Shown here piece after piece: positions 326 to 15,073 of a stretch of DNA of 64,000 nt. The notes below the pieces were generated by a model, which was not told where the DNA came from, did no database searches, and saw only the letters and a program-made list of their open reading frames with translations. Origin of the DNA: Macrostomum lignano (taxonomy: Eukaryota). A program made the position numbers and the translations under genes. Every line of letters starts with the position of its first letter. Within the stretch, counting starts at the first letter, position 1. The DNA lies in NCBI GenBank assembly GCA_002269645.1, contig NIVC01003097.1:55564-119563 (forward strand). Direction: 5' to 3'.

Positions 326-612
326 ATGCCTCTAACAAACAATACTAGCTCAGTAGTCATTGCTGAAAGCAGCAACTGGAAGCATTACGCCTTAGCCGGC
401 TGGTGCAGTGCAGTGTTCTTAGCCAGCTTCATCTCGAACGGGCTAGCCGCCTACAACATCCTGGCCTCGCCATCGTTGCGCAATCCGTCAATGCACGTGC
501 TGTGCTCCGGCTTCGTTGGCAACTGTCTGTGCGTGCTGTCGGCCGCCTCGCTTAACTTGGCGTCGGCTTGGCTGGCCGGAGAGTGGGCCTTCCACATGGC
601 CTGGTGCTACTG
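326..612 (+). CDS. Opsin exon 1 of 4 (N-terminus, TM1, TM2, ECL1, start of TM3)
   Basis: ATG at 326. Translation shows TM1 SNG, TM2 and ECL1 W-x-F-x4-C. Donor TG|GTGAG at 613 (phase 2) joins exon 2 to give WCYWYVF. Confidence 0.85.
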
Positions 613-1455
613 GTGAGACTGGGCTGCTCAGGGGGAGGAGCGGATCTGGTAGCATTAACATTAGCGGTCAACCTCTACTTAACTGTCTTGCAGCAGCGCT
701 GTTGATATCCACTGGATTAGTTGAAAAAAATCTGCATTAAAGATGTCGGAATCCAACGCAATTGTGAGACCCCCTGCTGAAAAAATGACATAAAGTCAAA
801 ATCTGCAACTCTGAACTAAAAGCACTCGGTTTTGCTTCATAATCATATATGGAACATTTCAAGCAGCCTGTCACGCAGTTTGAGTCGGTTTGGCTTCTGG
901 AATATTAGGGGGGGGGGGGGGGAGGGGGCAGGCAGAAAAAGCGGGAATCAATTTCGGCTCTAGTGGAATATACTTCAATAAAAACTGCCGTCTCCTCAGC
1001 GATCTCCGGGGAGCCGAAGGGAGCCGGTTAGGCTAGCTAGAGAGAGAGATATTTGCGGAGGCTGCAAGCCCTACACCAGCCATATTGGTTAGCGGGCTTG
1101 TGGTTGAGTGCGTCTAGAAAGCTTCTTCAAGCCAGCGTAGTTGCCGCAAAGTCCAACTAACATTTGGCAAAGCATAATTTATTTGATTGAAGACGTCGGT
1201 CGAGTCTGGACTTGAGTAGACAGCGAGCCAATGATAGAGCACTCGACGAATTAGTCAACTTCAATCAACTGTCAAACATTTTCAGTTTTGCAACAAGTTA
1301 AGCGTATTGTGTAGCGTTAGAGGAAGCTAAATTCAGTTGATGCTACGAGCTGGTTTACTGACAGACGGCAAAATTTATTCGCTAAAGCATTTGATCAAGT
1401 GTAGCGATAGACATCGGACCCGATAAACATCAAAACAGTCTGCCGGCTTGGGTAA

Positions 1456-2197
1456 CTCTCCCTCTCTCTCTCTCTCTCTCTCTCTCTCTCTCTCTCTCTC
1501 TCTCTCTCTCTCACACACACACACACACACATACACACAACAAGATCAAAATAGGAAATAAAGAACAAACGTACAGAATCAAAGAGAGTCAGAGAGAATC
1601 AGAGAGAGTCAGAGAGAATCGGAGAGAGTCAGAGAGAATCGGAGAGAGTCAGAGAGAATCGGAGAGAGTCAGAGAGAATCGGAGAGAGTCAGAGAGAATC
1701 GGAGAGAGTCAGAGAGAATCGGAGAGAGTCAGAGAGAATCGGAGAGAGTCAGAGAGAATCGGAGAGAGTCAGAGAGAATCGGAGAGAGTCAGAGAGAATC
1801 GGAGAGAGTCAGAGAGAATCGGAGAGAGTCAGAGAGAATCGGAGAGAGTCAGAGAGAATCGGAGAGAGTCAGAGAGAATCGGAGAGAGTCAGAGAGAATC
1901 GGAGAGAGTCAGAGAGAATCGGAGAGAGTCAGAGAGAATCGGAGAGAGTCAGAGAGAATCGGAGAGAGTCAGAGAGAATCGGAGAGAGTCAGAGAGAATC
2001 GGAGAGAGTCAGAGAGAATCGGAGAGAGTCAGAGAGAATCGGAGAGAGTCAGAGAGAATCGGAGAGAGTCAGAGAGAATCGGAGAGAGTCAGAGAGAATC
2101 GGAGAGAGTCAGAGAGAATCGGAGAGAGTCAGAGAGAATCGGAGAGAGTCAGAGAGAATCGGAGAGAGTCAGAGAGAATCGGAGAGAGTCAGAGAAT
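1456..2197. repeat. (CT)n-(CA)n-47-bp linker-(GAGAGTCAGAGAGAATCGGA)n cassette, copy 1
   Basis: About 30 copies of the 20-mer. The linker is identical to that of copy 2. Confidence 0.95.
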
Positions 2198-2255
2198 CCA
2201 AAGAACGAAAGACGAAAACTTTGTCAAACTTTTGCCGCCCGAAAAATCCAAAAAG

Positions 2256-2592
2256 GTACGTGTTCAGCACCAGCTCCCTGGGCCTGTTCAACATCAACTT
2301 ACTGACCGGCCTGTCAGCCCTGCGCTGCCGCATGGTGACCCGCAACAAGCCGTTTGGCAGAGCGCAAGTCCTGGTCCTCGTCTGTCTCTCCGCCGTGGTT
2401 GCCGCAGCCTGGAGCCTTCCGCCGATGTTCGACGTCGCCGGAGTCCGCCGAGTCGGTCACGTGGCCGCCTGCGATCTGGACTGGGAGGGCAACCGGACCC
2501 GCGACAAAGTCTACCTGGGCGGCCTACTGACTGCCGAGTTTTTGCTGCCCCTGGCTGTCATTGTCGGCTCCTATGTGGCCATCTTTGCGCAC
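2256..2592 (+). CDS. Opsin exon 2 (TM3-TM5)
   Basis: Acceptor AAAG|G at 2255 and donor CAC|GTGAG at 2593. Encodes YVFSTSSLG..LSALRC, WSLPPMF, ECL2 CDLDW and FLLPL..SY. Confidence 0.88.
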
Positions 2593-2618
2593 GTGAGCTG
2601 CCGGTGTAGCGTGTCCGC

Positions 2619-12229: not shown

Positions 12230-12815
12230 AAATGGAACTTTTCCCAAGTAGAAGATTTTGAGAGTCGAACTTTTTGTTGCGCACCTTCTAAAACAAAAAT
12301 CTTGAGTTAAGTTCCACCTGCGTAACAATTTTAACTCGGAAAAATCTCGTTTGGGTGCCCATAGTCCCTTGGTGTCACCTATTGAAGGTGCCGACGGTGT
12401 CGGGGTGGCGAAGGAATGCTTGAGAGACTAGCTGAGGATGTCCAGCAGTTGAAGCTTGCCGCCTGCCGAGGCTTGATCAGTGAAACTCGAGAAATTCGTA
12501 ACAGGGTGTTGATAGTCACCTGGTGCCACGTGTTGAAGGTCCAGAAGCTCCGCCTGGGTGAAGGCCAGTGACCACCGAAGCCAGAGCTGATGCAGACAGA
12601 TGCAGTTGACGTGCTGATGAAATTTGGAGGCTTGTCAAGGCTGCACTGAGGCGCAGTGCTGAGTGGCGCACAGGGGTGTGTTGAATACACTAGCGCTTAT
12701 GGGATAAATCCGACCTTCTGGCAGAATCGTTGAATATCTTTGAAGGTTTGAAATAAAAAGAAATTTTTTCTTGAAATTCGCAGCAAAAATTTATCAAGGG
12801 GAATTCCCGCCTTAG
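12230..12815. mobile_element. Second, more decayed member of the 3096-3610 family
   Basis: About 270 bp (12470-12740) align closely with 3213-3480. Remnants of both arms are present (aactttttgttgcgcaccttct; aataaaaag..cttgaaattcgc). Boundaries are approximate. Confidence 0.65.
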
Positions 12816-13242
12816 TAGATATTGCTACTGTAAACACCAGCTGTAGCTTATCAACTTTACCTCCAGTTCCATCGCTCGGGAAAATAAAGTCTCCTATTTT
12901 ACGGCAAGTTACAGCGCAGAAAAGAACAAAAACCGACGAAGAGCAAGCAAACGGATTCATCAAGGACTACTTAAGTGGTGCTTTAGTAGGACGACTAGCG
13001 GTCCTTGACTGTTACCTGGCCAAGTGCCCATTAGCTTCCTACGTGCACTGTGCTCTGCAGAGAAAGAGTAGGGGAAGTAACATTAAAAGTACAAACAGTA
13101 CATTATTCTAGACCAAAACGGACTTTTCAGTGCACGTTCATATCCGACTACCAAAAATGCCTACGAAAGCTTCCGATGCACAACGCCCAAAATCTCCCCT
13201 AGAACACATGCTAAATTCCTAAAAATAAGCCCCTTAAATATT

Positions 13243-14673
13243 CTTGCTAAAAGCCACCAAAAACCCTTGCCAAAAACCCTAAGAGCATTGACTAAAAACC
13301 ACCAAAACCCTTGCCAAAAACCCTAAAAACATTGACTAAAAGAAACCAAAACCCTTGCCAAAAACCCTAAGAACATTGACTAAAAGCCACCAAAACCTTG
13401 CCAAAAACCCTAAGAACATTGACTAAAAGAAACCAAAACCCTTGCCAAAAACCCTAAGAACATTGACTAAAAGAAACCAAAACCCTTGCCAAAAACCCTA
13501 AGAGCATTGACTAAAAGCCACCAAAACCTTGCCAAAAACCCTAAGAGCATTGACTAAAAGCCACCAAACCTTGCCAAAAACCCTAAGAGCATTGACTAAA
13601 AGCCACCAAAACCCTTGCCAAAAACCCTAAGAGCATTGACTAAAAGCCACCAAAACCCTTGCCAAAAACCCTAAGAACATTGACTAAAAGCCACCAAAAC
13701 CCTTGCCAAAAACCCTAAGAGCATTGACTAAAAGCCACCAAAACCCTTGCCAAAAACCCTAAAAACATTGACTAAAAGAAACCAAAACCCTTGCCAAAAA
13801 CCCTAAGAGCATTGACTAAAAGCCACCAAAACCTTGCCAAAAACTTTAAGAACATTGACTAAAAGAAACCAAAACCCTTGCCAAAAACCCTAAGAGCATT
13901 GACTAAAAGAAACCAAAACCCTTGCCAAAAACCCTAAGAGCATTGACTAAAAGCCACCAAAACCTTGCCAAAAACCCTAAGAGCATTGACTAAAAGCCAC
14001 CAAAACCCTTGCCAAAAACCCTAAGAGCATTGACTAAAAGCCACCAAAACCCTTGCCAAAAACCCTAAGAACATTGACTAAAAACCACCAAAACCCTTGC
14101 CAAAAACCCTAAGAGCATTGACTAAAAGCCACCAAAACCCTTGCCAAAAACCCTAAGAACATTGACTAAAAACCACCAAAACCCTTGCCAAAAACCCTAA
14201 GAGCATTGACTAAAAGCCACCAAAACCCTTGCCAAAAACCCTAAGAGCATTGACTAAAAGCCACCAAAACCCTTGCCAAAAACCCTAAGAACATTGACTA
14301 AAAACCACCAAAACCCTTGCCAAAAACCCTAAGAGCATTGACTAAAAGCCACCAAAACCCTTGCCAAAAACCCTAAAAACATTGACTAAAAGAAACCAAA
14401 ACCCTTGCCAAAAACCCTAAGAGCATTGACTAAAAGCCACCAAAACCCTTGCCAAAAACCCTAAGAGCATTGACTAAAAGCCACCAAAACCCTTGCCAAA
14501 AACCCTAAGAACATTGACTAAAAGCCACCAAAACCCTTGCCAAAAACCCTAAGAACATTGACTAAAAGCCACCAAAACCCTTGCCAAAAACCCTAAGAGC
14601 ATTGACTAAAAGCCACCAAAACCCTTGCCAAAAACCCTAAGAACATTGACTAAAAGCCACCAAAACCCTTGCC
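13243..14673. repeat. 44-bp minisatellite ending at the opsin exon 4 acceptor
   Basis: About 32 copies of GAGCATTGACTAAAAGCCACCAAAACCCTTGCCAAAAACCCTAA. Confidence 0.95.
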
Positions 14674-14675
14674 AG

Positions 14676-15073
14676 TGGGCTTCATGGTCTGCTGGACGCC
14701 CTACTCAATCCTGGCTGCCTGCAGCCTGGTCAGCCTGCTCCACATTGACAGCGGCCTCTACCTGGGGCTGTCCACTGCCGCTCTGCTCCTGGCCAAGGCT
14801 GGCATGGCCACCTCAGCGCTGGCCTACTTCGCTGTCAACGCCGAATTTCGTTCGGCATTCGCCTCCACTCCGCTCGGCAAACGACTGGGCTGCGTGCCGG
14901 CCAACGCCAACCATGGTGTGTCCATGGCCCAGCAGACCGAGGCTATGGAGCTGCGGCGGGTGAGAAACCGGAGCGACCAGGACTACAGCAGCAGCAGCGA
15001 CGAAGACAACGACAAGAAGCCGGCGGACGAGGTGGCTCCCCTGGCCGGAGATGGCGGCAACGCCACTGCTTAG
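14676..15073 (+). CDS. Opsin exon 4 (TM6, TM7 with Schiff-base Lys, helix 8, C-tail)
   Basis: Acceptor CCAG|TG completes a GTG codon. Encodes GFMVCWTPY and LLLAKAGMATSALAYFAVNAEFR. Stop TAG at 15071-15073. Spliced CDS is 1116 nt. Confidence 0.9.

Follow-up and report, generated by a model that had tools for sequence, protein, structure and literature searches.

A putative xenopsin B-type opsin gene of Macrostomum lignano without acidic residues at the canonical counterion positions

The opsin gene and its product

The window analysed here is a stretch of 64,000 nucleotides from Macrostomum lignano (contig NIVC01003097.1 of assembly GCA_002269645.1, positions 55,564 to 119,563 of the forward strand), and an opsin gene divided into four exons lies at its left end (Table 1). 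The predicted product is a seven-transmembrane opsin possessing the lysine of transmembrane helix (TM) 7, K296 in the bovine rhodopsin numbering used for functional positions, and the C110-C187 pair; retinal would be bound through this lysine, which is K280 of the protein itself. The reading that we prefer, and to which we give somewhat better than even chances, is that this gene is intact, has been maintained by selection and belongs to the flatworm xenopsin B type; its product would be an unusual sensor and not an RGR-like isomerase.

Once joined, the four exons form a coding sequence (CDS) of 1116 nt, or 371 codons, and every intron has the GT...AG form; exon 3 was located by tblastn, using as a query P0001, a Macrostomum lignano UniRef fragment of 134 aa. 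An earlier interpretation made from the letters of the window (the sequence-only reading) had spliced four exons into 371 aa, and the same model was rebuilt here, with the coordinates of exon 3 added; the intron positions and phases estimated at that stage (about 112, phase 2; 229/230, phase 0; 259, phase 1) match those of the rebuilt gene. The GC content is 62% in the CDS and 79% at its third codon positions (GC3), against 44-47% in the introns, a contrast that represents a clear coding signature.

Table 1. Features of the window: the opsin gene, its residues and motifs (named by bovine rhodopsin position) and the surrounding elements. ECL, extracellular loop; ICL, intracellular loop; GPCR, G-protein-coupled receptor; ORF, open reading frame.
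Feature	Coordinates	Strand	Remarks
Exon 1	326..612	+	Start ATG, N-terminal N-x-T/S sequons, TM1, TM2, ECL1, N66 (bovine 83), N77 (bovine 94), C94 (=C110); ends inside codon 96 (phase 2)
Intron 1	613..2255	+	Phase 2, within the bovine 112 codon; after codon 95
Exon 2	2256..2592	+	TM3, TM4, ECL2 hairpin VRRVGHVAACDLDWE, TM5; ends at bovine 229/230, phase 0
Intron 2	2593..7655	+	Phase 0, bovine 229/230; after codon 208
Exon 3 (94 nt)	7656..7749	+	ICL3 and start of TM6, IRRHRSSIVSTSSGNQARRDRQFVIHVLAII; D228 at position 6.30; ends in codon 240 (bovine 259), phase 1
Intron 3	7750..14675	+	Phase 1, bovine codon 259; after codon 239
Exon 4	14676..15073	+	TM6 with CWTP, ECL3, TM7 with K280, helix 8 NAEFR, tail, stop TAG 15071-15073
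K296	14795-14797	+	K280 (AAG), kept
C110 / C187		+	C94 / C168, both kept
CWxP		+	CWTP, kept
N310...F313-R314		+	N294-A-E-F-R; N, F and R kept, Q312 replaced by E (E296)
E/DRY	2320-2328	+	L118-R-C, changed
NPxxY	14813-14827	+	S286-A-L-A-Y, changed
D83		+	N66, changed
W161 (TM4)		+	A142, changed
113		+	Y97; Tyr, as for most non-vertebrate opsins
181	2452-2454	+	V162 (GTC), changed
188	2473-2475	+	D169 (GAT), unusual Asp
192		+	E173, acidic, in ECL2
211	2536-2538	+	E190, Glu in TM5
223		+	Y202, kept, TM5
94 / 292		+	N77 / L276, both non-acidic
186			Ala in place of S186
VxPx	15032-15043	+	VAPL, residues 359-362; preceded by SSSSDEDNDKK
Satellite arrays	1575-2195, 2619-3015, 3813-5505, 6742-7586, 8144-8388, 9118-9931, 13247-14674, 15448-16263		
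Class-A GPCR, prostanoid-receptor-like	25693-26589	-	298-aa single-exon ORF, TM1-TM6, Pfam 7tm_1
248-aa ORF, single-pass membrane-like	33496-34242	+	Thr/Pro-rich region, one hydrophobic segment, no Pfam match
Diaphanous-related formin	40976-44972	-	Over several ORFs; GBD and FH3 44157-44972, poly-proline FH1, FH2 42536-43960 and 40976-41650
Ty3/gypsy-like retroelement pol	58795-62410	+	Pfam aspartyl protease, reverse transcriptase, RNase H

Pfam recognizes 7tm_1 as the sole domain of the protein (E 5.6e-21), and the best matches of a sequence search in the PDB are human SWS1 and bovine rhodopsin (E 3e-13 to 3e-12), with peptide receptors ranking lower. An exhaustive HMMER search over 1.84 billion representative proteins, from which the 150 nearest were taken for a MAFFT alignment, returned P0001 as the only close relative (66% identity, E 2.6e-40), all other matches having at most 28% identity; Lys is present at position 296 in 131 of these 150 proteins, and Glu at position 181 in 125. 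The AlphaFold2 model, obtained with a 76-sequence alignment (predicted local distance difference test score, pLDDT, 87.4; predicted template modelling score, pTM, 0.83), has seven helices, helix 8 and a beta-hairpin in ECL2, formed by strands 159-162 and 167-170; K280 is inside helix 265-293. Squid rhodopsin and jumping-spider rhodopsin rank at the top in the Foldseek comparison of this model, followed by bovine and cone opsins.

The columns of the functional motifs were checked by HMMER against bovine rhodopsin, by MAFFT with the 150 homologues and by L-INS-i with 43 named reference opsins. All the motifs that the sequence-only reading had called, both kept and changed, were reproduced in the alignments and fit the AlphaFold2 model; the pattern is far beyond a chance effect. 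The L-INS-i columns show E94 in the box-jellyfish opsin and D292, G181 and S113 in the coral ASO-II opsin, and the recovery of these known residues validates the column assignments. One quick FFT-NS alignment left the 181 column gapped, but the three other alignments put V162 there; since they agree with the hairpin strands of the model, V162 is assigned to position 181. The loss of both counterions E113 and E181, claimed from the letters, thus stands, the two positions being occupied by Y97 and V162, and the hairpin register places Val, not Glu, at 181. The retinal pocket is otherwise canonical (G121, L122, W191, L207, F212, F261, W265, Y268 and A295).

The homologue P0001 is 64% identical to the window protein over the exon 2 region and ~74% identical over exon 3. 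The best-conserved stretch is the VRRV[G/S]HVAACDLDWE block of ECL2 (~24 of 28 residues), whereas TM4 is poorly conserved, and Val is found at position 181 in both proteins; this pattern suggests that the Val is old and constrained and does not result from decay. Indeed, it is very improbable that the gene is decaying or non-functional, or that it codes for a light-independent GPCR unable to bind retinal, even though its branch is very long, with at most 28% identity to any non-macrostomid opsin, several class-A motifs are degenerate and the introns are full of satellite arrays. The ORF of 371 codons runs uninterrupted through the four exons, which extend over 15 kb, with four splice junctions reported as consensus, and GC3 (79%) contrasts with intron GC (44-47%); moreover, K296 and the retinal-pocket residues are kept, ECL2 and TM5 are strongly conserved with respect to P0001, and the AlphaFold2 model is confident.

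Assignment to the xenopsins

Xenopsins have two introns with conserved phase, distinct from the c-opsin introns (Vocking 2017, Doring 2020). Exon structures were mapped for xenopsin, c-opsin-like, neuropsin-like and bathyopsin-like genes from public assemblies. In Lingula XP_013397676, in a mollusc-type xenopsin (44% identical to Argopecten xenopsin) and in a rotifer xenopsin, introns are found at bovine 229/230 in phase 0 and in codon 259 in phase 1, and introns 2 and 3 of the window gene are identical in position and phase to both of these conserved introns. The two xenopsin-type introns are absent from the c-opsin-like, neuropsin-like and bathyopsin-like genes mapped; the neuropsin-like gene has no intron in common with the window gene, and the c-opsin-like gene exhibits the classical pattern (121 phase 1, about 177-186 phase 2, 232/233 phase 0 and 312/313 phase 0). 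A c-opsin assignment was rejected, as the window gene contains no intron at bovine 121 phase 1, 177 phase 2 or 232/233 phase 0, the nearest one being three codons away from 232/233. Among the origins suggested by the sequence-only reading, the xenopsin one is therefore supported, while the intron comparison that it had proposed, once run, decides against a c-opsin-like one. P0014 is 34% identical to xenopsin A, but it was dropped as a xenopsin reference because its intron pattern is unrelated.

A Logan contig of 1521 bp (run ERR14224704) encodes P0151, a polyclad-type xenopsin B that is 59% identical to Prostheceraeus vittatus xenopsin B2, and it appears to provide the first gene-structure information for polyclad xenopsin B: the N-terminal 226 residues are contained in a single exon, which ends with ...S-Y-G-R-I-V-K-M and is followed by a gtgagt donor at 229/230, phase 0. 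Intron 1 of the window gene, a phase-2 intron that splits the Trp codon at bovine 112, two residues past C110, is absent from the three mapped xenopsin loci and from the P0151 contig. This intron coincides in position and phase with one of the bathyopsin-like gene P0007 (LSGCK/WYAFA), a match that may be ancestral or coincidental, by parallel gain.

In BLASTP searches against the references, i.e., 43 named opsins that Rawlinson et al. (2019) list in a supplementary table and bovine rhodopsin, P. vittatus xenopsin B2 came first (30% identity over 209 aa), followed by flatworm xenopsin A; RGR and retinochrome came last (E 3e-4 to 0.5). In 174 of 200 bootstrap replicates, the neighbour-joining (NJ) tree, built on 285 trimmed columns, joined the window protein to polyclad xenopsin B2 as its sister; support for xenopsin monophyly was negligible, and RGR/retinochrome were never sister to the protein as long as xenopsin B was present. 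An RGR/retinochrome origin was rejected on the basis of this weakest similarity and of the tree. The NJ placement hangs on the long-branched xenopsin B references, and the weight of the assignment was therefore moved to the introns and to the signature residues.

Among these residues, the Glu at position 211 in TM5 (motif EF.LP) occurs in nine of 194 aligned opsins. Four of these are polyclad xenopsin B sequences and two are entries of the same Lingula protein, XP_013397676; the others are the window protein, P0001 and the uncharacterised P0108. P0151 also carries this Glu. An L-R-x sequence instead of DRY is found in the window protein (LRC), in P. vittatus B2 (LRH) and in P0151 (LRL), and the start of ICL3, RRHRSSIV, resembles the CRNRYSIV of B2. 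The C-terminal tail SSSSDEDNDKKPADEVAPL aligns with that of Argopecten xenopsin (SSSDSDDNKK...QVAPA) with a score of 58, while composition-preserving shuffles scored 28.4 +/- 5.3 and none of 1000 reached 58; against the tail of Maritigrella xenopsin the corresponding count was 16 of 1000 shuffles. VxPx is a ciliary-targeting motif known from clade A xenopsins and c-opsins, and in this tail it would deliver the protein to the ciliary membrane.

Judging from these comparisons, the gene can be assigned to the xenopsins with high confidence, and it most likely belongs to the flatworm xenopsin B lineage, with retention of an ancestral-type tail; the xenopsin intron signature would then outlast extreme sequence divergence. 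Several points weigh against this assignment or against the sensor role. When the long-branched xenopsin B references are left out, the protein wanders among all opsin groups in the NJ tree, and the tree evidence taken alone leaves room for long-branch attraction. The VxPx motif is at a distance of 12 residues from the C-terminus and, considered alone, could be a chance occurrence, while the tripeptide is N294-A-E296 and not NxQ, the Gln being replaced by Glu. Degeneration of NPxxY and DRY, as predicted here, was read by earlier authors as a loss of G-protein signalling; finally, the P0001 fragment stops before TM7, upstream of the K296 site.

Polyclad XenopsinB1 and B2 resemble the window protein in keeping K296, in the loss of P303, in the degenerate tripeptide and in E211; further resemblances are L-R-x for E/DRY (B2 type), the ICL3 start R-x-R-x-S-I and, in the polyclad-type B contig, the 229/230 phase-0 intron. 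However, they have an acid at 181 (Asp in B2 and P0151, Glu in B1), where the window protein has Val, and VxPx and the acidic Ser-rich tail, both present in the window protein, are missing from them; B2 has H113 instead of Y113, the contig is devoid of the bovine 112 intron, and protein identity is only about 30%. Xenopsin A (e.g., the Gi-coupled protein of Maritigrella crozieri, and Argopecten APB88016) shares with the window gene both conserved introns, Y113 and a C-terminal acidic cluster followed by KK and then VxPx, and W161 is absent from flatworm xenopsin A as well; unlike the window protein, which lost all of them, it keeps DRY, D83, E181, [N/D]PxxY and NxQ.

Xenopsins are central to the debate on the evolution of ciliary versus rhabdomeric photoreceptors in protostomes. 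Flatworm xenopsin B has had no functional characterisation, and most of what is known of it comes from incomplete transcripts of polyclads; the present locus adds a complete gene and its exon structure in a macrostomid-type genome. In a survey of 30 flatworm transcriptomes, Rawlinson et al. (2019) found xenopsins in polyclads and triclads only and none in macrostomids, in which putative ciliary photoreceptors have been described (Rawlinson et al. 2019); no description of a Macrostomum opsin was found in the literature searched. It is conceivable, though less likely than not, that this gene is the missing photopigment of those cells, and Macrostomum is a tractable transgenic model for studying its function in vivo. 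Motif degeneration and the isomerase idea are already known for xenopsin B. What appears to be new is a member of macrostomid type, together with its gene structure and the absence of every canonical counterion residue.

Counterion and signalling

At 94, 113, 181 and 292, the four positions for which a counterion role is established, the predicted protein has neither Asp nor Glu. The sequence-only reading had started from the premise that visible-light opsins use E113 or E181, which is outdated, as E94 is the counterion in the box-jellyfish opsin (PMC10220492), and chloride plus E292 have this role in coral ASO-II opsins (PMC12401545); since positions 94 (N77) and 292 (L276) are also non-acidic, the counterion gap is wider than that reading had stated. 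Counterions are not mentioned in the xenopsin papers searched, including Rawlinson 2019 and Doring 2020. The box-jellyfish opsin JelRh, a cnidopsin, provides a precedent for counterion displacement, and cnidopsins have been reported as sister to xenopsins, but position 94 is Asn in the window protein. The functional flatworm xenopsin A of Maritigrella crozieri has an Asp at bovine 94, the box-jellyfish counterion site, besides E181.

The E113Q mutation makes rhodopsin ultraviolet (UV)-absorbing (PMC2726285). With no acid at 94, 113, 181 and 292, and with Ala at 186, the simplest expectation for the window protein is a low pKa of the Schiff base and a UV/violet dark state; in this case, the Schiff base, lacking a canonical counterion, would most likely be unprotonated in the dark. 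Alternatively, it may be protonated with a non-canonical partner, either one of the ECL2 acids, D169 (188) or E173 (192), or an anion from solution close to R160, R161 and H164. We tentatively consider that the protein could embody a new counterion solution, in which a bilaterian opsin would stabilise the Schiff-base proton, or dispense with it, in an undescribed way, through the Asp188/Arg179 pair, Glu192 or an anion on the basic beta-3 strand; the odds are, however, clearly below even. If true, this would be a fifth counterion solution, arisen within the xenopsins. The protein would in any case offer a natural experiment on the counterion problem, having a canonical retinal pocket minus all four known counterion residues.

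In the more specific form of a visible-light pigment whose counterion was relocated to ECL2, with D169 (188), maybe paired with R160 (179), or E173 (192) replacing E181, the proposal seems unlikely. Asp at 188 is indeed rare (four of the 150 homologues), and P0001 has it too, along with D190 and E192; in the register of the AlphaFold2 hairpin, 160 would pair with 169, both sharing a face with 162 and 167, and displaced counterions have precedents at 94, 113 and 292. Nevertheless, the support for D169 comes from the hairpin register (DSSP), and the cross-strand R160 could neutralise this Asp; furthermore, echinoderm chaopsins have D188 together with E181, so that D188 need not be a counterion, and many opsins with E181 have E192 as well.

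The coral ASO-II opsins (Antho2a; PMC12401545) offer another model: they have no acid at 94, 113 and 181 and no E(D)RY, as the window protein, and absorb at ~500 nm only in the presence of Cl-, yet they drive Ca2+ signalling (PMC12401545). By analogy, chloride or another solute anion near R160, R161 and H164 might act as the counterion, and the unusually basic beta-3 strand VRRVGH, conserved in P0001, is compatible with such an anion-dependent pigment. This appears quite improbable, however, as ASO-II opsins depend on E/D292, which is Leu here (L276), and Ala replaces S186, which the ASO-II model counts in the polar surroundings of the Schiff base. In addition, ASO-II opsins keep NPxxY, belong to an unrelated cnidarian clade and did not group with the window protein in the NJ tree.

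As for signalling, the sequence-only reading had held that most G-protein motifs are lost. The losses that it listed are real, the residues lost or changed with respect to bovine rhodopsin being E134L, Y136C, D83N, N302S, P303A, Q312E and W161A; the statement is nevertheless overstated, since N55, R135, P215, Y223, the Asp at 6.30 (equivalent to E247), CWxP, Y306, N310, F313 and R314 are kept. W161 is missing also in the Gi-coupled Maritigrella xenopsin. The tail contains a Ser cluster and acidic residues typical of receptor phosphorylation sites. Activation would probably proceed through the retained R135, Y223, Y306 and CWxP, weakened or altered owing to L134, N83, S302 and A303. The rotifer xenopsin-like P0011 has Asn at 83, Ala at 113 and SSGIY for NPxxY, and keeps ERF, E181 and NKQ; the loss of NPxxY, like that of D83, has thus occurred at least twice within the xenopsins.

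A different role has been considered for these proteins. According to Rawlinson et al. (2019), the TM7 lysine is retained in clade B xenopsins, whereas NxQ and VxPx are missing, and these proteins "might" act as photoisomerases; Doring et al. (2020) found several flatworm xenopsin B sequences with strongly modified NPxxY and tripeptide, and questioned their G-protein signalling. The photoisomerase proposed in the sequence-only reading was thus an idea already published for xenopsin B, and the VxPx motif, like the acidic tail rich in Ser, is evidence against an RGR-like role. If the protein were a photoisomerase or recycled retinal without signalling, it would bind all-trans retinal and regenerate the 11-cis form in light, with no G-protein activation. 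Grouping with xenopsin B, for which both papers raised this possibility, and the degeneration of E/DRY, NPxxY, D83 and NxQ are in agreement with such a function. RGR and retinochrome, too, bind retinal, have been proposed to act without signalling and deviate in some of their cytoplasmic motifs, but they belong to the tetraopsin clade, generally have E181 and short tails without VxPx, and have other gene structures.

Several features make the isomerase doubtful. RGR and retinochrome are unrelated to the protein and were the worst BLAST references; moreover, the RGR and retinochrome references keep ERY or NPxxY, so that losing these motifs is not an isomerase signature. The long Ser-rich acidic tail with VxPx is kept as in signalling xenopsins, unlike in polyclad xenopsin B, and R135, Y223, Y306 and CWxP are retained; a canonical xenopsin A partner was not found in macrostomids in a published transcriptome screen, and a visible-light isomerase would need a protonated Schiff base too. 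An altered sensor thus appears more likely than a pure isomerase, by a modest margin. Sequence analysis cannot tell apart a UV pigment, a new counterion and an isomerase.

Surroundings of the gene

The introns of the opsin gene and its 3' flank are dominated by satellite arrays. A 20-bp unit, AGAGAGTCAGAGAGAATCGG, forms the arrays 1575-2195 and 3813-5505 of introns 1 and 2, respectively; intron 2 also contains 32-bp arrays, and units of 32, 45 and 49 bp build further arrays in the region. In intron 3, a 44-bp array (32.6 copies, 13247-14674) reaches the acceptor AG of exon 4 (14674-14675) at the edge of its last unit.

No second opsin copy was found when one was sought in the 64-kb window. The GPCR at 25693-26589 was rejected as a second opsin, being prostanoid-receptor-like: its best solved relatives are the prostaglandin E2 EP4 and EP3 receptors (E 5e-8). 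Nothing in the window ties this GPCR, the formin or the retroelement, all located downstream, to the opsin. For the FH2 segment of the formin, a word-index search returned no homologue. The Ty3/gypsy-like pol is followed by an ORF that is integrase-like by eye.

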